Below, piece by piece: positions 1,328 through 34,951 of a DNA stretch of 64,000 bases; positions within the stretch are counted from its first letter, which is position 1; each line of letters opens with the position of its first letter. The translations under genes were made by a program, and so were the position numbers. The notes under the pieces were generated by a model. The model worked only from the letters and a program-made list of their open reading frames with translations. It searched no databases and was not told where the DNA came from. The DNA is from Pelomyxa schiedti (taxonomy: Eukaryota; Protista; Evosea), in the NCBI GenBank assembly GCA_020536535.1, contig JAHLWZ010000828.1:34799-98798 (forward strand), given 5' to 3'.

Positions 1328-4300
1328 ATGTCGGGTGGTTGGTGGGGAGGCACATCGGCTCCCAGCGGATACAACACGTGGACACCAACAACAGCAGATC
1401 AAGTTTATCAGCCCAATCAGTTCTACCCCGTGACCCAAACACCCCAACAACTACACACGCCTCTAGCCAATGACAGCAACAGCAACCAGTACGCCTACGC
1501 ATACCCCCAACAGCAGCAGCAACAGCAACAACCAATCTACACTCCTGTAATGCAACAGCCGGGGGCACCCCAAGACTACCCGCAGTTGCAATCGCAGGCC
1601 TACAATTCATCGCCGCCATATCTACAACCTGGTGTTTCTCAGTGTGTTGGACCACCCCCACCCCCACCTTCGTATGACGAGGCAGTGGCTTCCCTGGCTT
1701 CCAGTTCTGTTTCTCTTTCTCTTTCTAGCTCTTGTTGTTCTTCATTACTGAGCTCATCCTCTTGTATGGGCACTCCGGCTGCTTACCAGACACCACAGTG
1801 TTTACCAGCAACACAGACACCAACTTATGGGACCCAACAAGAAATTCAGGGTGGTTACCAAATCACACAGTCCTCATTACCAAGCTATTTATCATCTCAA
1901 CCCCCATCACAAATTCCCCAAAATATTACAGGAACTCCACAACGCAGCACAATGCACTACAATCAAATGTCACTTACACAGTCCTCACAATACATATCTC
2001 CAACGTATCAGACAATACAACAGCAGCCACAGCCTTCATATACGCCTGTTGCGAGTAACTCTGTTTCGAATTCTCAATATTCTACACCTTCTCCCGATCC
2101 GGGATATCCATCCCTCCAACCTTCCCAACCACCTTCTTATACTGATTCCTTGAGAACGGGAATCGTTTTGGGAAACGGTTGTATGCATTTCCCTCACATA
2201 GATTTCTTTGTGGATTCGATCGGCTTTAGTAAGTACACATGATTTTAATTCTTTCCAACTCTGGTTAGCACAAGGCAACAACTTTATGCCTGAGCACATC
2301 ACTTTGATGAAGGCTGGTACTCGTGTGGATCTTTATAGTAGGAACAAGAAGATTAGTTCTTCAATAATGTCTTTGAGAGCTAATAGCTGGTTCATCGACT
2401 GTGCAACAACTTCAAGTAATCTGCTTTTTCCCTTTATCGCACTCATGTTTCTCAGTTGCTATAACGTCAATTAAGGAATTGCGGAAAGGACAGAAAACAA
2501 CTGCCTTTATCAACAACAGGAACAATACAGTACTTAAATACATGTCTCGCCTCACATAACATTCGCACAGACTGCGTCATGCTCTTTCTCTCTTGTGTAC
2601 TGCGAGTGGAATAAACTGTTAACACTTGATGTAGTTGTTCCATCAGAAAGTGACTTTACAGCCTGGACTAGTGGAATCATTCATTTAGTAACTTCCCTAA
2701 GTGGGGAGAGCTCTGAGTATGTCACTTGGTAAAGAGGTACACTTACTCAAAGGTAGTTTTCACCGTCTAGAATGGGATCAGGCCACACAACCAGTAAATG
2801 CATCTCAGTTAAGAACAATCCTCATGAATTTGAACTTCAACATTTCTGTTGCAGAATTCAGAGACCAAATAACAGTATCTAGCCCCTTATCTTTTGAAAA
2901 CTTTTTTCCCATACCTTTCTCTAGACCTTGGGTTTATCAGCTGATGGACCTTACACGTTCACTAATTTAACTGCTTTGATCTCGTCACTGAAGTATGTCC
3001 CATTCGTTATTTTCCCTTCTTTTTTCTTTCTTTTTTTTTTCCCCTAGGCTGCGGTCTGAGATCTCTGCACTTTTCAACACATACTCTAATGGTAAAAAGA
3101 CCCTAAATTACGATGAACTGTCGCTGTTCTTCACAAGGGAGCAACAGGTTTTTACATACATTTTCTGTAACTATGACTCATTCCTCAGAGTTCTCTCACC
3201 ATGCAAGAATTTCAAAGAATTCTTTCTCAATACGAACCTTCAACAGTATCACCTAATCTCTTAATTGGCAGTAACCTTTTCAGAGTAGGGAGCTCTCTAT
3301 TCAAGGCTTTGACGCAATGATGACCAGTAACTCCAATGAAGTTTTCGATACAACTAAAACTATGTATTGGAGCCATTTTTATCATTATTTCTCTAACATC
3401 CAGCAGACAATATATGCCTGAGGATTGCCCTCTTTCATATTATTGGATAGCCAGTTCACATAATACATATTTGGAGGGACACCAGCTCCAAGGAGAAGTG
3501 AGTACAAAGTCAATTTACCATAAACTGTAACATATTGTCTTAGTCCTCACTGGAAGCCTATCTTCGGGTATTAAAGTCAGGATGCCGATGTATTGAAAGT
3601 ATTTCTGAACACCTTCTTCCTGTGATTAAAAGTATGAAATCCTGCAGTTGATACCTGGGACGGCGAAGATGGTGAACCAGTCACCTACCATGGATATACA
3701 TTGACTACTAAAGTTAAATTCCTCGATATCATGGTAGCCCTCCGCGATTACGCTTTCCTTTTCACTCAGTAGTCCAGAACCATCCCTACTACCAACTAAT
3801 GAACTCTCCAAGGTGCCCTCTTATTATCTCACTGGAGAATCATTGCTCACTTCCCCAACAAAGGAAAATGGCACAGTATTGGAACGACAATATTGGAGGT
3901 ATTTGCATTCTTTGTATTGCGTCTAACAGTCAACGCAGCTGTCACAGCTACGCCGATACACCTCACCCAAAATGAATTATGTCAGTGCCTTCCAACTCTC
4001 AAAGAATTGAAAGGCAAAATCTTACTTAAAGTAAGCTGTACTCTCTTTGCTGGTAGTTTAACAACTGTATAGGCCAATGTAAGAAACGAGTCACTCTCTG
4101 CCTCAGTTATGTCAGTTTCCAGTGAATTATCATCCTTGACGTATCTAAAAATTGCCAATAAATCAGATATCCCACAAGATCAAAGTAAACCTTCATTTTT
4201 GTTGTGCTTACTGCTGAAGTATTTAAGCCTCTATGAAAATGATGAATGCCTACGAAATTCTTAATCTTAGTGAGACTGCCACTCAAAACCAGGCTACAAA

Positions 4301-5193
4301 CATCCTTTCAAATTTCAATATGCTACACATGACACGAATTTACCCAAAAGGGACAAGAGTTGGTGAGAGCAAACCTACATTCTTTTATCTTATTGTAATG
4401 GGATAGATTCATCAAATTTTGATCCCACACCGTTCTGGGGTCTTGGATGTCAAGTAGTAGCTTTGGTTACAAAGCAATCTTGATCAACCAGGGAAACTAA
4501 TAAGAGACTAGAACTATCAAACATCATCCGAACCTATATGGATTAATACAGGACGATTCAGAGAAAATGGAAAATGTGGCTACGTTCTAAAACCAGTGCA
4601 CCTCAGAGTTTCTCAGGAACCCCAAAATAAAGTTCGCAGGTTATCCATAACAGTATGCTTCCGGAAGTACTTCTTTTATGTCTCCCAAGCCATCATTTAG
4701 ATTATAAGTACGAGACAAATCCCTCTAAACAAAACTGTGGGAGCAACTATGTTTGTCACACTCAAAGTTCATGAGGAACTTCCAATTGGTGCTTCTTCAC
4801 AGACTGTATCTGAGTATAGAACAAGAAGCATTGGTACCCCCGTTTCCCGCGTTCAACTACTTATTAGAAGATAGAAAACAACCTAAATCCGGTGTGGAAC
4901 GAAACAGCAAATTTCGGCATCCAGTGCAGCAGCACAGCCGTACTCATAATCAGACTGGATAAAAACGATCGTATTGGGAAATCAAGGTTCCTTACCTTTC
5001 TTTGCTCCATGCCATTCACCCTTCTTGAAGGATTGGACACTACGTTGTCCCCGTGGAATGTGCGCTCTTTTTCTCCTCTTCCATTCTAAAAACAAACTCA
5101 GGTATCAGAAGTGGAGTCCGTTTCGTTCCTCTCTTGGACGACCTATCGTCTCCGATTCCTTTTGCGAATTTGCTATGCCGCTTCCAACTCTGA
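1328..5193 (+). CDS. PLC: Phosphoinositide-specific phospholipase C (low-complexity N-term, PH, EF-hand, X, Y, C2)
   Basis: X box [56 protein letters not shown]; Y box [17 protein letters not shown]...GCQVVALNYQT; C2 NPVWNE; both catalytic His present; stop TGA 5191-5193. Confidence 0.93.
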
Positions 5194-5215
5194 ATAAAGA
5201 AATCACGTTTGTTCC

Positions 5216-8200
5216 TTATTCTGATATTTCTAGAGGCCAGTGAATGGTAATGAATGGTGCAGGAGGAGAACATTGGTCGGGCTCCAGCACAGAAAGTACA
5301 AAACGAGTGGATTCCTTGGTGCGGTTGCCAAAGTGGGTTGTAGCTACCCCAAAAACAGTGACGGGAGAATTCGGCTGTCGACACCCGAAAAATCTCACAA
5401 TGGCTCGGTATTCTCCTGGTTGAGCTTGCTTGATGGAATACACAATCGGGCCATGGGCCTATTTTAATTTATTTGTTTGCTTTGTGTAGAACTCCAAACC
5501 TTGATTTCTCTTGACATAAGACCCCCTGAACTTGTTATATTCCTCATTGAACAGCAGAGCTCTCCTGAAGGCTCAACTATAACAAGTTCCATATCCCACT
5601 CAATATCAAAAAATATAGCAACCCGAATGTCAAGCTCAAGTAACAACGGGCACGCGATTGCTCGGCTTACTATTTCAAAGTTGGTCGAGGAGGGAGTGGA
5701 GAGAAAACATACCGGAAAAGACCTTTGGTACTTCAGAGGTCAAGGATAGAAGGGAATGCGCCCGAGAAAACTCTGTTACTGCAGCAATCTCAACTTGATT
5801 GTATACTGTATCCCACACAGTGTTAACGATTCTCTGTAATAGTAGAACGGACTTGTCCATGTTAGCCAGGACCTACAAAAAGAAGTAAACAGAGCTTTTA
5901 AGTAATTGAATGCACTTGAACCTGTGCCAGTGGCGAATTGTAGGAAAGAGCAACGCACAGTAAAAGCAATGCTGAGGGATCAGAGATGGCTAGGTCACAT
6001 AGTCTTTCACATACTTCAATAGCCCTGGCTGTCATTCCCCAATGAAGTAGTACAAATGTGGTCATCCAAAGGTAACTGGGACTTTCGCAGTTGCATTCCA
6101 GGATTGTTGAGAGGTGGAGATAAGCTCTCTCAGTGTTTCCAGTTTCAAATATATCACAGGCTTCTACAACAATAGCGTGTGGTGAGAAGCCACACAGAGG
6201 CAGTTGATAAGTGTATGAAATGGGGGTGACTGGCAATAATCTAACCCTGGGGCGTTTTGGTGTCTTCAGAGTCTCCAAATCATTTTCCGCGGGTCTTTCT
6301 GCAGATAGGCTTCTACCAGATCTCTTTCTATGGGGCGGAGACACTGGTATTGTAGTCGAATTGTTACCCTCTGGAGACACTTCTGTACTGGGCCTCATAT
6401 GCCTGGTTTTAGGGTCATAATATGCGGTAGTTGGATCCATGTTCAACAGGTATTTGGAGGTGTCTTCTCTTATTCGCAGCTGTCTAACTGACAAATGTGA
6501 CTCCATGGTTGGCACAAATGGTTTGAAAGGGGCATCAACAGTCATTTTGCATGGAGAAAACCTTTCGTCTAGTTTTGCAGCAGCCATTTCATGCATAAGG
6601 TATCCCCCAGAGCTGTAAAAGCCTTCCCACCAGGTGACATAAGACTGCCACCAGTCACCAATAATGTCCACTTTCTTTTCCTGAATATGGGTTTTTAATG
6701 CTTCCTGCTTCATCACCAAAAGATGGTATTGTGCACGAAGCTCTGGCAGTGAGGAAGGGGGAACCAAGTTATGCTTCACATATTGCTCCAGGGTGTCTAG
6801 AACAAGAAACGAAAGGCCAGCTCGCATCACGCCATACTTGTGTGCAATTGTCTGCATCAAGTGATTGGAAGAACAATTACTGGAGTGGAAGTCTATTTTT
6901 TGTGATCCGTAGAGGAGAGAAATGATGGGAGGCCCCCTTTCAGGGGATTGATTAACAAAAGTGATGGAATTCAACACCTGAGAGCAACAGGTGGTTGTAA
7001 CAGTCACTTCTCGAATTTGTGGGATCCAAGAAGAGATCTTTCCAGTAAAGAGGAGAGGACTTGTGACTGTTTGAGATTTCGGATAAATCTGGACTCGATG
7101 AGGTGGTCCAACAGATAGTGATAAGGTGCAAGTTCTACCAGCAAGTTCTTCAAGCTCAAAAGTGTTGGCACCACTAATGTTAAAGCATGTCCCGCCATTC
7201 GTGGAGGTAATCTTGTGTAAAAAGGAGAAGTTTGCACTTGGCTTGGCAGAAAATGCATGGAGAGGAAAACTGAACGAGGGTCGGTCAGGCAAAACAGCAG
7301 GGACAGACTGAATCCCGTCCGTAAACAGTAATGAAAACCTGGCTTTCTGACTTTGCAGTTCACTGTTGAAAAGGAAGCGGAAGTCAGTGCCTCCAGCAGG
7401 TTGCACTTTCGCAATGAGCTGCATGATACTTGTGGCTGAAGCTCCACAGTCATATAAAACAGGAGGGCGCAAATTTATGTCGAAGAAATATAATGTCACA
7501 GAGGTTCTTTCCAGTATGTGTGCCAGTATTCTTGACAAAACTGCAGCTTCCTTTTCTGCTTCTGGTCCACTGTGGCTGCTTGATGTGTCCCAAAGGAGGA
7601 GGACTGTTTTGTCACCTAACTCCAAAGGAGGTAGTGTGCAGGATGCTAAGCATAACGGATCCACAGAAGCAATAAAAAAGAGTGAGCCATTCTTTCCTAC
7701 TTCTGCAACGATATTGGGGTATTGTAGGTTCAGTTTTATCTCGCCGCATAATTGACTCAGGTTGACACAGGTAAATGTTTCTTGTATTTCATAACGATCT
7801 GAGGTACTTGATGCACCATGGTGTGTTATTGCAGGAGGGAATGATAGAGTTGTGACTTGGCCACAGAATACTGTAAGGTGGAATGAAAAGTACATAACAT
7901 CATTTCTAATTCTACTCCCGAAAGAAATGGGCACAAGAAATCCCTTTTGGGAGATAGTGTCAACAAAGGATACTCGAATGACCTTGCCATTCCCGAGATC
8001 TGGAACCCTCGTCGTGAAAACGTTGCTCTGTTCAGCTCCAATACAAATGAGAATTCAAAGCTAAAAAAGAGAATAGTCCTACCTGGTCATGTGCCTCCAT
8101 AAAAGAAACGTTTCCTCCACGCCTAATCTCTTCATCGAAAACCGAGCGGGATACAGGCTTGGTTGCCAACACAGCTTCCTTCATGTGATCCACATCCAAT

Positions 8201-8531
8201 CCAACAGCTACCACCATTAGTGCAACAAGTAAGTTAACCAACACAGTTATTAGAGGTATCACTATTTACCATATCCACAAACACAAGCCGTTGGAGACAG
8301 TGGGAAAATAAAAGTGCCCTCATCCTCACTCAAACAGTCACCGGCGCTCCCCGGACGCTCGCGCCCATAATCCTCACCCACAGAGCCGCAGTGGCCATCA
8401 CGTCTCCCGAACTGCAGCGTGAAAGTACACCGTGAGGCAGGCCCCACGACGGTCCAGTCAATCGTAACCCCTGTTGGCAAGTGCTCAATCCCCCGGCCGT
8501 CAACGAGGCCAATCGCGCTTGGCTCAAACAT
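5216..8531 (-). CDS. Bacterial-type VIT + vWA + TPR + DUF2135 (YfaP-like) protein
   Basis: VIT-like N-term ([39 protein letters not shown]); v[15 protein letters not shown]...GGTD...LLFTDG; helical TPR-like region; C-term [25 protein letters not shown]...GGLMSR...[19 protein letters not shown] typical of DUF2135. Confidence 0.75.
6393..6491 (-). other. Slu7-like conserved peptide embedded in-frame in the VIT/vWA protein
   Basis: [33 protein letters not shown] versus human SLU7 as recalled, [33 protein letters not shown] (24/33 identical). Confidence 0.85.
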
Positions 8532-8568
8532 TCTAAAATTCGTGTTTGGAAAATTCTTGATTTACACA

Positions 8569-11500
8569 TCATACACTCTTTGTGCTTTTGGGAGTGGCAA
8601 CGCCACTACAGCCCCACAAGCCAAGATTTTTGTGCAGTTTTTGTACAGGTTCCTCCATCTCTGGGAAAACCTTGTGCATGGAATCATACAACGGGCACAC
8701 AACCAATTCGTTGAAGGCGCTCTGTCGCAAAATTAGTACTTTGTAACAAACACTGCATAAATGAGAATGAGCTAACCTGCATCTTCGGAATGTTACAGTC
8801 GTCCCTTTTCATAAACGGGGAAACCGGCAACCCAAAGCCTTGCTCCTTGTCACCTTGCTCAAAGAACTCGTTCACAACGCGATGTGCCCACTGCTCGGAA
8901 GTCTTCCATTCTCGGGCAGAGTTCGCTAAATCTGCGCACTTGATAAAGAGCTTCAGAGCAAGTAGTCTTGATGCATTATCTCCAAACTTCAACGTATTTC
9001 CGGATGCCGTACTTGACTTCCACATGCCTAGGAGCTCGACGTGCCTGGAATTCTTGAGTTCAATAATGAGAATGGGTTATATTTTACCTTGACATATCTG
9101 TAGCTAATACAAGATTGATAACGAGGGTACGGAACTCGCGGAACCTATTGTATTATGACAATGTCAACAAAGATCGCAATGTGATACATTTCTTTCGAAA
9201 AAGATGTTGTAAAATTCAAATCTGGCTGTTCAAGAAGTTGGAAAGCTGTGCAAGCATGGAAGTTCTCCAAAATGGAAATATCGTTATACGTAATACTGAG
9301 TTTTGATCTAGTGGCTTTTGGGAGGTGAATTTATTTTCTTGCAGACAATGGTTCTGCATACCAATCAAGAAATTGTTGTTAACCCCTTTGTGGCTGTTAA
9401 ATTGTGCCGAACTCCGTCATTTTGCTAACCTGGGTGCTGGATATCGTGGATGATAGCCGCAAATAACGCGGAAAAGTGCTCAATGGGAGTTAACTGCAAA
9501 TAACTTCCACATTTAGTCAGAAACCAATTCATTGCCTGAAGTACTTCGCATGCATGGAACTGGCAAGAGGTAAATGAGGGTACGTATTCGGACAACTTTC
9601 AAAGTAGTACCCTATTGTGGTATGGATTGTCGTTGTAAGCCTGGTCAGCCGCAGAGATGTAGTTTGAGAGCTGAGTTACAGAAATTGGCAGACTATGTAA
9701 GACCGCACATGAATGCAATATATACGCAGCTGTTTGCGCCAAGACAGGACCTATGGAGATATGAGACCCTTGAAACCTCCGCATTATTTCATTACCCTCT
9801 ATTCCCAGTGGACAGAAATCCCAGTTATTAATTTGTTGGAGCAAGGTTGGGTCGCATTCTCCATGTTGTCTTCAGATGTCACAAAAAAATAGAGAACATT
9901 TTAACATACGAAAGATTATTCCGCCCGATAAATGGTGTTGGCATTGCAGAAGAGGTATTTTTGGTCAATACTTGATCATACAGGTACTCCTTGATATCAT
10001 TTTCCAGTTCTATAGGACATTGGAGATCAACCGGTGGCCTACGCACTAACCTGATACATGGCTGTAATCTATACTATACATCTTTCGTGAAGTTATAATG
10101 CCAATAGCATATTCTAACTTATGAACTTCCTTGGCAGGTATACCTGACACGACTATTAAAGTGGAGCCAAACATAATAATGCTCATACATTCTCTTAGCG
10201 TAGTCAAAGTCCGAACCACACTTTCTGCAGGCGTGCTCAGTAAATCTCCTACAGATACTTGCTGTCCAAGTACAGATTGAAGTTGTACATTTTCCTGTTG
10301 CAGTTCGTCATTCACTTTGGCCATTCTTTTCTGTGTGTTTGTTAGGGGAATTACAAAGGGAAGTACAATACTAGTCTCCGAAGTAAAAACAGTGCAATAG
10401 ACACCAATATAAGAAATACAACTGCTATAAATAAAACGAAAGGCAGCCAAATGACCATTACTGACTCTGACTTGCTGCATTTGTATTCGACTACAAAACC
10501 AACTCCAGAAGTGGCAAAATCTGTCACAAAAAGAAGCAGAACATGCTTAGAATGTGCTATTACAGGTGCAGCCGAGCTTCCACTTAGTATAGATACCAGT
10601 TCCCCGTAGGTGGCATTTTCATCTGAGAGCCTTATGTTGAGTCCATCACTGCCTTCAATGGAAAAAGTAGTGAAGGTGAAGGTAATGGTGTCGTAATCTC
10701 CTTGTGGTGAAATCAGCCACGCGCAGTACGAATTTGGCGCGTAAGCCATATAGAGTCCTTCAGCTGGATAGTCACTCTGAATAACGCCACTGGGCTCGTG
10801 TAACTCCACAAGGTTACTGCAACCTCGCGAACAGTCATACCAGAACCTCCCCATTTCACAAATACACGCGGTTTCGTAGCAGAAACCATGACCGCTGCAT
10901 TGGTTAGAAAGCCCTTCCACACACGAAACGTTTTCGTATCCACAAGATGTCCAATCTTATGCTATAAGCGGAGGTAATGATAGAGATAACTTGTTACCTT
11001 GGACATGTATTGCAGAAGAGAGAATAACAAGGTCATCATTGGATTCTCCAACTGAGAGCAGTGAGCAAGGAAATTGTCAAAAAGGTGCACACAAGTTTCA
11101 ATCGTGAGAGTGTAGTCTCCAGGGGGGAAGTGGGCCGGAATAACGTGTTTCCCTGACACATTAAAATCGTCGCTCATAGTTCCCTCTAACTCTAAGAGTT
11201 CGGACCAAGAATACAAATACCTGGATAGAATAAGGAGAGAAAAGTGATATAACTTACCTCCAATCCACTTGTCGGTCTCCTTGGCTTATGCTGTACCACG
11301 CCCATAGCGAAGAATAAAATATCTCATAAGAAGTGGCACTGAATAAAGCACAAATCAGAAAATTTCCACAGGATGTCAACTTACGGGAGAAAGTAAGTCA
11401 TGTTCAATCTTTGCTGTGGGCATAGGGTAGTTTCCATTTGGAGCTGCATCCCACACTGGTAACCTGACCAAGGTTCGTTGCATTCACACTGACCAAGCAA

Positions 11501-33728: not shown

Positions 33729-34951
33729 TTAGTACCAAACCTTGGCAAGCTCCTTCCGGAGCAGATTTGGAATGGAGAGATCAGGTGTTGGAGAACCCAG
33801 CATCAGTAGGCAGAAGTTATCTGCTAACGCCTCTTCTGGGTGGTTAATATCTGAATTTCTGTAAGGAGGATGTAGGGAAAAAGGTGGTTTACACTCGGTA
33901 TTCCCAGATAATAGTGTCACATATTCTAAGGATTCACTGGGTTCAAAAAATGTGTTTGTGGGCACCCATTGGTTTGTTGCTTCATTAAACTCTATGTGCA
34001 TTAGCTGGAATTTCAGGTAGGCAAAGAATGAACCCCATCCAGGGTATCTGGTGACAAGTGAAAGGTGAAGAATAAAGGATGGCTACGATACCTCTCTACT
34101 GAAGAGTACATCACAGGCAAGAGGTTTACGGGGTTACCATCTATTTTAGTTGGTAAATACCAGTCGCTGCAAAGGACATCTGGGTTTGATATCCTTCGTG
34201 GGTGCAGATGCGGAGGCAGTGGAACGTCATTGGAGCACTTGACAAACTTTAGGGATGAGTATAAAGTTTTCCTTAAGGCAGGGGTGCTTGTGCTCAAAAT
34301 GTGGAACATTTCATGGAACAAAACTCGGCGATTGACCATTCCTGGTGGAAGTGCAATTATATGCCCTTGTCTACAGTAAGCGGCCCCTGCTTCTTCACGA
34401 CCAGAAGTCTTAGCCTAGCAATGGAGATGATGAGAGTACTGCAGATTTGTGATGGTCCCAACCAAGATTACAACTGGTGGAAATGGAAGAAATATATGAA
34501 GTTCCTGCGCTCTAGAAACAAGAGCAAACACATCAGCTTTGAGTTGAGCCATATCTGCAGAAGTTAGGTGCAAGTAGAATTATCAACTGGCGCAGTAGGA
34601 GTGGTTCCATAAACCTGCGGGACTGAAGTCTATCCCGGACCTTGCAATGAAAGCAAGGTACTGATCTTCCGTGGGCTGCGCATGGATTAATGTTAGAAAA
34701 GTACTTTTTCCGAGCACTAGCGCTACCTCCTTCGCGGACTGCATCTTAGCTTGCCTGTCAAATGGACCCAATGCTCTCACATACGGATCATTGGGATCAG
34801 CCAACAGTGCCCCAGTTTCCTGCTTTGATGCAAACCTGAATGTAGTTGTTTTCGTAACACTTTCCCCTGATGCATCAGATGAGTTTGTCGAATAGCCATG
34901 CCCTCTCCCACTCGGGACCACTTGTTCTACGGTGAAAGAATGAGGGTCCAT
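33729..34951 (-). CDS. Putative zincin-type metallopeptidase, bacterial-like
   Basis: FASKQE...GPFDRQAKM; EAGAAYCRQGHIIALP; VLFHEMFHILS (HExxH at 34301-34315); RISNPD; NHPEEALADNF (third ligand candidate). Confidence 0.65.

Follow-up and report, generated by a model that had tools for sequence, protein, structure and literature searches.

A Slu7-derived block and other spliceosomal fragments in the linker of a prokaryote-type vWA protein of Pelomyxa schiedti and its relatives

A gene of the amoeba Pelomyxa schiedti raises the question of why a conserved piece of the splicing factor Slu7 should lie in the middle of a protein that otherwise resembles bacterial ones, and whether it could have a function there. 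The gene, referred to here as the vWA gene, is located on the minus strand of contig JAHLWZ010000828.1 (assembly GCA_020536535.1), within a stretch of 64,000 nt (contig positions 34,799 to 98,798) that was analysed as a whole and is called the window; all coordinates below are window positions. The encoded protein is comprised of an ITIH-like module with a probable VIT domain and a vWA domain, a linker carrying the Slu7 block, TPR repeats, and a DUF2135 region (Table 1). An initial annotation, made from the sequence by itself, had already singled out the Slu7 block. As found here, the block does not stand alone: it is part of a mosaic cassette that is specific to one lineage and extends across a clade.

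The Slu7 block and the gene that carries it

The block and the basic tail that follows it are both contained in an uninterrupted open reading frame (ORF) of 678 codons (5898-7934, minus strand). Slu7 is the single Pfam family found in this frame: PF11708 matches positions 6381-6506 (ORF residues 477-518, profile positions 75-116 out of 253) with the E-value of 7.7e-15, and, when the linker is scanned by itself, the score is 58.7 bits with the cutoff of 27.9. In phmmer searches against PDB sequences, residues 249-298 of human SLU7 were matched with the E-value of 3.9e-10, and residues 241-277 of yeast Slu7 were matched weakly. The match is far above chance level. The minus-strand translation yields, in frame, exactly the 33-residue peptide quoted in the initial annotation (ORF residues 482-514), and the phmmer alignment gives the same count of 24 residues out of 33 identical to human SLU7. 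EVSPEGNN and the basic stretch, said to come next, are indeed found in the following 57 codons, which end in KTPKRPR. The motif of the Slu7 central block, R-I/L-RED..YL......YDPK-S/T-R, is present, and the residues common to yeast and human Slu7 (R.RED, YL, YDPK.R) are all retained, save for one alanine replaced by serine.

The remainder of Slu7 is missing, as had been claimed. Motif searches of the ORF found neither the CX2CX4HX4C zinc knuckle nor the EIE motif of the Prp18-binding helix, and, with three Slu7 proteins as queries, tblastn found nothing else resembling Slu7 in the whole window. Upstream of the block, searches of PDB and Pfam produced no match. In Slu7, the block comes after the Prp18-binding helix and opens the C-terminal region, and the CCHC zinc knuckle anchors the protein on the N-terminal domain of Prp8. 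As the full domain, the zinc knuckle, and the EIE helix are all absent, the window protein does not belong to the Slu7 family.

The region is present in four public sequencing runs, all from one sample, of which three behave as DNA and one as RNA. Assemblies of all three DNA runs cover 4900-8900 in a single contig with zero differences; these runs are possibly the source data of the genome assembly and are thus not independent of it. The RNA contig (1970 nt) is continuous over 5920-7308, across the Slu7 block, which means that the block is kept in the mRNA, although assembled RNA contigs may miss rare isoforms skipping it. Further on, three introns of 49, 43, and 41 nt with GT..AG ends on the minus strand are missing from the contig, and the joining of exons stays in frame. 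Hence, of the checks named in the initial annotation, spanning of the junctions has been confirmed by three DNA assemblies and one RNA contig that cross the block base for base, and removal of the segment by splicing is contradicted by its retention in the RNA contig. RNA coverage is nil over the 5' half of the gene, about 7309-8541 (zero depth over 7312-8517), probably due to the 3' bias of the library; more small exons of the probable VIT domain lie between ∼7935 and 8260. The gene is intact, transcribed, and correctly spliced. P. schiedti is reported to be intron-rich, with 7.4 introns per gene (PMC8887013).

Table 1. Features of the vWA gene, listed in the direction of transcription (window positions).
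Feature	Positions	Strand	Evidence
First exon of the probable VIT domain	8268..8498	minus	tblastn to N-termini of P0160 and P0046
Large intron-free exon: VIT end, vWA, linker with Slu7 block, first TPR helices	5920..7934 (7934 is the ORF limit)	minus	ORF; RNA contig
vWA domain, MIDAS intact (DTSSS 7575-7589; T183, D206)	7155..7622	minus	Conserved columns; pLDDT >90; ITIH1 fold match
Long helix ending in DWW..WW (residues 397-437), last conserved scaffold element before the linker	6624..6746	minus	Alignment; AlphaFold2
Disordered linker (residues 458-581) holding the Slu7 block	6192..6563	minus	AlphaFold2 pLDDT <50, no secondary structure
Whole Slu7-derived stretch, equivalent to human SLU7 249-298	6378..6533	minus	Pfam, phmmer, tblastn
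Core Slu7 block, 33 codons	6393..6491	minus	Translation; 24/33 identity to human SLU7
Pro/Ser/Arg-rich linker tail; KRPR NLS-like motif 6246-6257; may be a decayed remnant of MYST (KAT8-like) motif A	6222..6392	minus	Borderline
GT..AG intron, 49 nt (cut shiftable by 2 nt)	5871..5919	minus	RNA contig joint, run X4
Exon, end of the TPR region	5713..5870	minus	RNA contig
GT..AG intron, 43 nt	5670..5712	minus	RNA contig
Exon, DUF2135 core with the EPSGE motif	5499..5669	minus	Matches to P0160, P0001
GT..AG intron, 41 nt	5458..5498	minus	RNA contig
Last coding exon, stop codon 5216-5218	5216..5457	minus	ORF; RNA contig
MIDAS, metal ion-dependent adhesion site; NLS, nuclear localization signal; pLDDT, predicted local distance difference test.

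Spliceosomal fragments in the linkers of the nearest relatives

Among 1.84 billion representative sequences, the window protein has 1242 homologues with the E-value of at most 0.001, including 215 with the E-value of at most 1e-10, and nearly all of them belong to the prokaryote-type VIT-vWA-TPR-DUF2135 proteins. The relatives considered here were taken from the best 150 of the 1242, three of which are of the eukaryote type. P0011 is a protein of P. schiedti itself (KAH3756815.1), encoded on a nuclear contig with ordinary eukaryotic genes on either side; the GC content of its locus is 0.441, and that of the window is 0.442. Repeats common to this locus and the window were sought, and none were found. 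P0157 and P0008 are encoded on two long contigs of ENA assembly ERZ21831265, belonging to a eukaryote with introns of 34-43 nt; P0157 has a 98% allele, P0007, and P0160 is the full-length spliced transcript of P0008. Together with the window protein, these three relatives form one clade with the Shimodaira-Hasegawa-like approximate likelihood ratio test support of 100; the branches of the clade are long, and attraction is possible. The identity of the scaffold to that of the relatives is 22-36%, depending on the stretch compared.

The relatives share with the window protein not only the scaffold and the tiny introns but also the presence of spliceosomal fragments at the same site of the linker, past the WW..WW helix and before the TPRs, while the fragments themselves differ. 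The linker of P0007/P0157 carries the SNW motif region of SNW1/Prp45 (26.5 bits, cutoff 25), a weak PDB match to the N-terminus of SF3A2 (residues 24-66, E-value 0.12), and a degenerate Slu7 block (pairwise E-value 2e-6) that has lost RED and YL. The linker of P0160 contains a whole SF1-type KH-QUA2 domain (E-value 1.9e-23); for its residues 728-790, YJU2 proteins (residues 2-24) are the sole PDB matches (E-value 0.5), and an RGG run and KRHKRWDD, resembling a U2AF ligand motif (ULM), are seen by eye. P0011 has a G-patch (26.8 bits, cutoff 22) and a block corresponding to MFAP1 330-353 (27.8 bits, cutoff 26.8). All five strongly supported fragments (Slu7, SNW, SF1 KH, G-patch, and MFAP1) and two of the three weak ones are thus spliceosomal or related to RNA processing. 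The weak fragments are individually insignificant and consistent in theme only. The YJU2-like, SF3A2-like, and ULM-like pieces, as well as the basic tail of the window protein (see below), have no Pfam matches, and the YJU2-like and SF3A2-like pieces and the tail have weak PDB matches only. With different spliceosomal fragments occupying this position in each of the three nearest relatives, it is the clade-wide cassette that has to be explained as a unit.

In P0160 (L005; genomic locus L003:8001-11976), the linker fragments are all kept in the spliced transcript. In P0157, tblastn suggested that the Slu7-derived stretch might be longer, but this was rejected, as its far end aligns equally well to the start of the scaffold TPRs.

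The Slu7 motif is absent from all of the best 150 homologues, which are otherwise bacterial-type; hence, the same chimera, which the initial annotation had proposed to look for in related genomes, was not found among them. Since the window block keeps the residues shared by yeast and human, unlike that of P0007/P0157, where RED and YL are gone, it is either young or constrained. Word-indexed searches, which have low sensitivity here, produced three weak bacterial matches for the whole ORF, only P0011 and one bacterial-type protein for the alignment of the four clade members, and only three ordinary Slu7 proteins for the Slu7 region, the best of them (P0004) from an unrelated, intron-poor organism. 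A scan of JGI metagenomes with the alignment yielded four loci with 21-25% identity, which were uninformative.

Comparison of the two alleles provides an estimate of the rate of linker evolution. Between P0007 and P0157 (L002:8001-11012 and L004:727-3735), 12 of the 17 amino acid differences fall in the linker, and the ratio of non-synonymous to synonymous substitution rates (dN/dS) reaches 0.96 in the linker, compared to 0.30 in the scaffold, the underlying counts being small (11.5 non-synonymous and 3.5 synonymous). This comparison suggests that the linkers evolve fast, either neutrally or by diversifying selection.

The scaffold and its linker

The window protein belongs to the VIT-vWA-TPR-DUF2135 family, although its own domains have diverged too far for Pfam thresholds. 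In particular, the VIT domain scores 13.2 bits, below the cutoff of 26.5, and the DUF2135 exon has no Pfam match when scanned alone. By tblastn, the putative VIT region matches the VIT regions of P0160 and bacterial P0046 weakly (E-value 0.011), and its end together with vWA has the E-value of 4e-13. The DUF2135 core exon (5499-5669) is 52% identical to the C-terminus of P0160 (E-value 7e-17) and 36% identical to bacterial P0001, which carries PF09906 (E-value 4e-8). In the AlphaFold2 model, built from 55 aligned sequences, the confident parts are vWA (pLDDT >90), helix 397-437, and five TPR helices at residues 585-666, which align with the TPR region of the homologues. The metal ion-dependent adhesion site (MIDAS) is formed by DTSSS at residues 116-120 together with T183 and D206, the latter two in invariant or near-invariant columns.

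The window protein has the same order of domains as the uncharacterized bacterial proteins of this type (P0001, P0046, P0065), and MIDAS, SFLVLD..PP, WW..WW, and EPSGE are found in both. The bacterial proteins have signal-peptide-like N-termini and a low-complexity linker. By contrast, the gene of the window protein is interrupted by spliceosomal introns, a signal peptide is absent, and the linker contains captured eukaryotic fragments. The closest solved structure to the modelled scaffold is that of ITIH1 (PDB 6fpy; Foldseek E-value 1e-14), with which it shares the VIT and vWA fold with MIDAS. However, ITIH proteins are secreted proteins of animals that lack both the TPR/DUF2135 module and the linker cassette, and the identity is only ∼15%. 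Thus, of the initial description of a horizontally acquired scaffold with a captured Slu7 fragment, the in-frame chimera and the prokaryotic type of the scaffold hold, while the bacterial origin seems probable from the distribution of homologues rather than from a rooted tree.

The top match in AlphaFold DB clusters, A0A814SK92 (1243 amino acids), covers the entire scaffold in the alignment, TPRs included, which may hint at prokaryote-type scaffolds in other eukaryotes too. The model of residues 1060-1353 of P0160 (pLDDT 88) is comprised of four TPRs followed by the DUF2135 beta-sandwich, the latter having a weak Foldseek likeness to TerD (3ibz, E-value 1.2e-3).

The linker, ∼124 residues between the VIT-vWA module with its long helix and the TPR repeats, is filled in bacterial homologues with variable low-complexity sequence. 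The Slu7 core starts 45 residues past the DWW..WW motif, and the alignment agrees with the earlier placement of the block just past the WW..WW end, where bacterial homologues have a variable linker. One bacterial homologue, P0009, has a CarboxypepD_reg domain at the same position (residues 646-719), and hence the linker takes insertions in prokaryotes too.

The tail of the linker had been described as resembling an arginine/serine-rich (RS) domain or a nuclear localization signal (NLS). The KRPR motif and the Arg/Ser-rich composition are indeed present, but the tail may be a decayed MYST block instead. It has no Pfam match; for positions 6246-6380, KAT8 proteins (approximately residues 131-180, the region of acetyl-CoA motif A) are the sole PDB matches in phmmer (E-value 0.4), and the pairwise score with KAT8 is 69, compared to 22.4 ± 3.8 for shuffled sequences. 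Therefore, the tail could have originated as another captured block, now decayed, and not as an RS domain, but, the match being borderline, we treat it as unexplained.

The neighbouring genes are spliced as well. Downstream, at 4900-5195 on the plus strand, an RNA contig has two GT..AG introns (44 and 42 nt) belonging to a convergent gene that ends beside the 3' end of the vWA gene. Upstream, at 8542-8900 on the minus strand, the RNA contig of the adjacent gene is spliced at a 55-nt intron (8722-8776). Further away, at 3336-3530 on the plus strand, an ORF fragment has a PI-PLC X-box-like signature (SSHNTYL) and is likewise an exon-sized piece of a eukaryotic gene nearby.

Possible roles of the cassette

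We propose that the linker could be a selected "spliceosome-peptide cassette", a flexible and probably nuclear tether that displays imitations of the segments through which spliceosomal proteins interact. The linker would then attract whatever normally binds the Slu7 segment, and such binding would be sequestered or reported by the shared vWA/TPR/DUF2135 scaffold. Selection is suggested by the recurrent capture of fragments with the same theme, which is very unlikely under random insertion. In our tentative estimate, with the probability of roughly 45%, the cassette serves as a bait or decoy for foreign factors that target the spliceosome. We rank this role somewhat above that of a competitor at the Slu7 site on Prp8, as the donors of the fragments span all stages of splicing, the cassette changes its content from one paralogue to another, and linker evolution is fast, and also because the scaffold resembles a binder or sensor and not an enzyme.

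Several observations weigh against the bait or decoy role. Library scans assigned the scaffold to no PADLOC or NCBIfam family, and no recognizable signalling or effector domain was found on it. Approximately 50 residues cut from a globular domain may bind nothing. As HMM searches detect conserved blocks only, they are biased towards finding the most conserved piece of any donor, and several of the fragment calls (SF3A2, YJU2) are weak. None of the relatives proved to be an orthologue with an equally well-preserved Slu7 block, and the loss of RED and YL in P0007/P0157 demonstrates that such blocks can decay. The linker dN/dS near 1 fits neutrality as well as diversifying selection. Finally, the KAT8-like block, if real, would be nuclear but not spliceosomal.

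Some of these observations are what one would expect if the cassette were a neutral passenger. Pieces of genes would have landed, by exon capture or templated repair, in a linker that tolerates insertions, and would be slowly decaying, the Slu7 block being the youngest or the slowest-decaying one. The hypervariability of the bacterial linker, including the case with an unrelated CarboxypepD_reg domain, the dN/dS of ∼1 in a relative, the degenerate block in P0007/P0157, and the predicted disorder of the linker are all consistent with that. Still, spliceosomal and RNA-processing proteins constitute a few percent of the proteome, and their share among the fragments, five of five strong and two of three weak ones, is not expected from random capture; moreover, the frames are open over 2-4 kb, and the cassettes are retained in mRNA in two species. 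Hence, we consider neutrality unlikely. Alternatively, the cassette could act on splicing itself. The C-terminal region of Slu7 binds and stabilizes the RNase H-like domain of Prp8 in C*/P spliceosomes (PMC6461851). The Slu7 block, corresponding to the part that contacts this domain, could, together with the basic NLS/RS-like tail, bring the protein there, competing with Slu7 or tethering the vWA/TPR scaffold and thus tuning the use of 3' splice sites among introns of 40-55 nt. Retention in the block of the residues conserved from yeast to human, the KRPR motif with the Arg/Ser-rich tail, and the presence of other spliceosome-binding pieces in the relatives agree with such docking, and so do the very short introns of the host, as yeast Slu7 is dispensable if the distance from the branch point to the 3' splice site is short. 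On the other hand, the donors of the fragments in the relatives act at the E, A, B, C, and C* stages, which is a poor fit to one regulatory step. Besides, the protein lacks both anchors of real Slu7, namely, the zinc knuckle and the helix that binds Prp18, and the linker evolves fast; docking or competition therefore seems unlikely as well.

Two further explanations would make the chimera less unusual. It could result from misassembly, from an unannotated intron removing the segment, or from pseudogenization, all the more so as a single sample yielded all DNA runs, which are perhaps the source of the assembly, rare isoforms can escape assembled RNA contigs, and the 5' half of the mRNA has no RNA coverage. 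Yet three DNA assemblies and one RNA contig are identical across the junctions, the 678-codon frame is open and is continued by in-frame splicing to a conserved C-terminus, MIDAS is intact, and the same architecture occurs in relatives from another organism, which makes an artefact or a dead gene highly implausible. The protein could also be a divergent genuine Slu7 paralogue fused to a vWA protein, given that the PF11708 match is above the gathering threshold. We have rejected this as barely conceivable, since the match covers 42 of 253 profile positions, and the zinc knuckle, the EIE helix, and a second block are lacking.

Integrated-decoy immune receptors, such as plant nucleotide-binding leucine-rich repeat receptors with integrated domains (NLR-IDs), and the bait or "tripwire" linkers of NLRP1 and alpha-2-macroglobulin carry pieces of host proteins or bait regions. 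The likeness of the bait or decoy display to NLR-IDs is in concept only: host protein pieces would be presented by paralogues with a common scaffold, in a region that is variable and evolves fast, and four members of the clade do have different spliceosomal fragments at one position. Unlike those systems, the window protein and its relatives have no STAND NTPase (NB-ARC/NACHT), leucine-rich repeats, thioester, or death-fold domains in Pfam and PADLOC scans. The inserts here are mostly short peptides, while those of NLR-IDs are whole domains, and an immune role would be assigned by analogy only.

In the searched literature, we found no description of the Slu7-in-vWA architecture, in agreement with the initial annotation, which knew of no described example, nor of the clade-wide pattern, and nothing relevant on integrated decoys in amoebae or on Mastigamoeba vWA proteins. 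There is a real chance of something categorically new. As no paper in the searched literature mentions DUF2135, any function found for this family would be new. The logic of integrated decoys may recur here on a different, prokaryotic-type scaffold, in an amoeba, with the spliceosome as the theme. In its broadest form, which we regard as doubtful, Archamoebae would possess an expanded set of surveillance paralogues sharing the bacterial-derived, ITIH-like VIT-vWA-TPR-DUF2135 scaffold, their disordered linkers presenting baits copied from core host machines, here the spliceosome. This would be a form of "integrated decoy" immunity in a protist, not known before and independent of NLRs. A functional cassette could point either to eukaryotic surveillance proteins of a new class, with the spliceosome being targeted by parasites or symbionts of amoebae, or to a new mode of modulating the second splicing step where introns are extremely short. 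A neutral one would still be of interest as a rare natural record of fragments captured repeatedly, datable against the donor genes.

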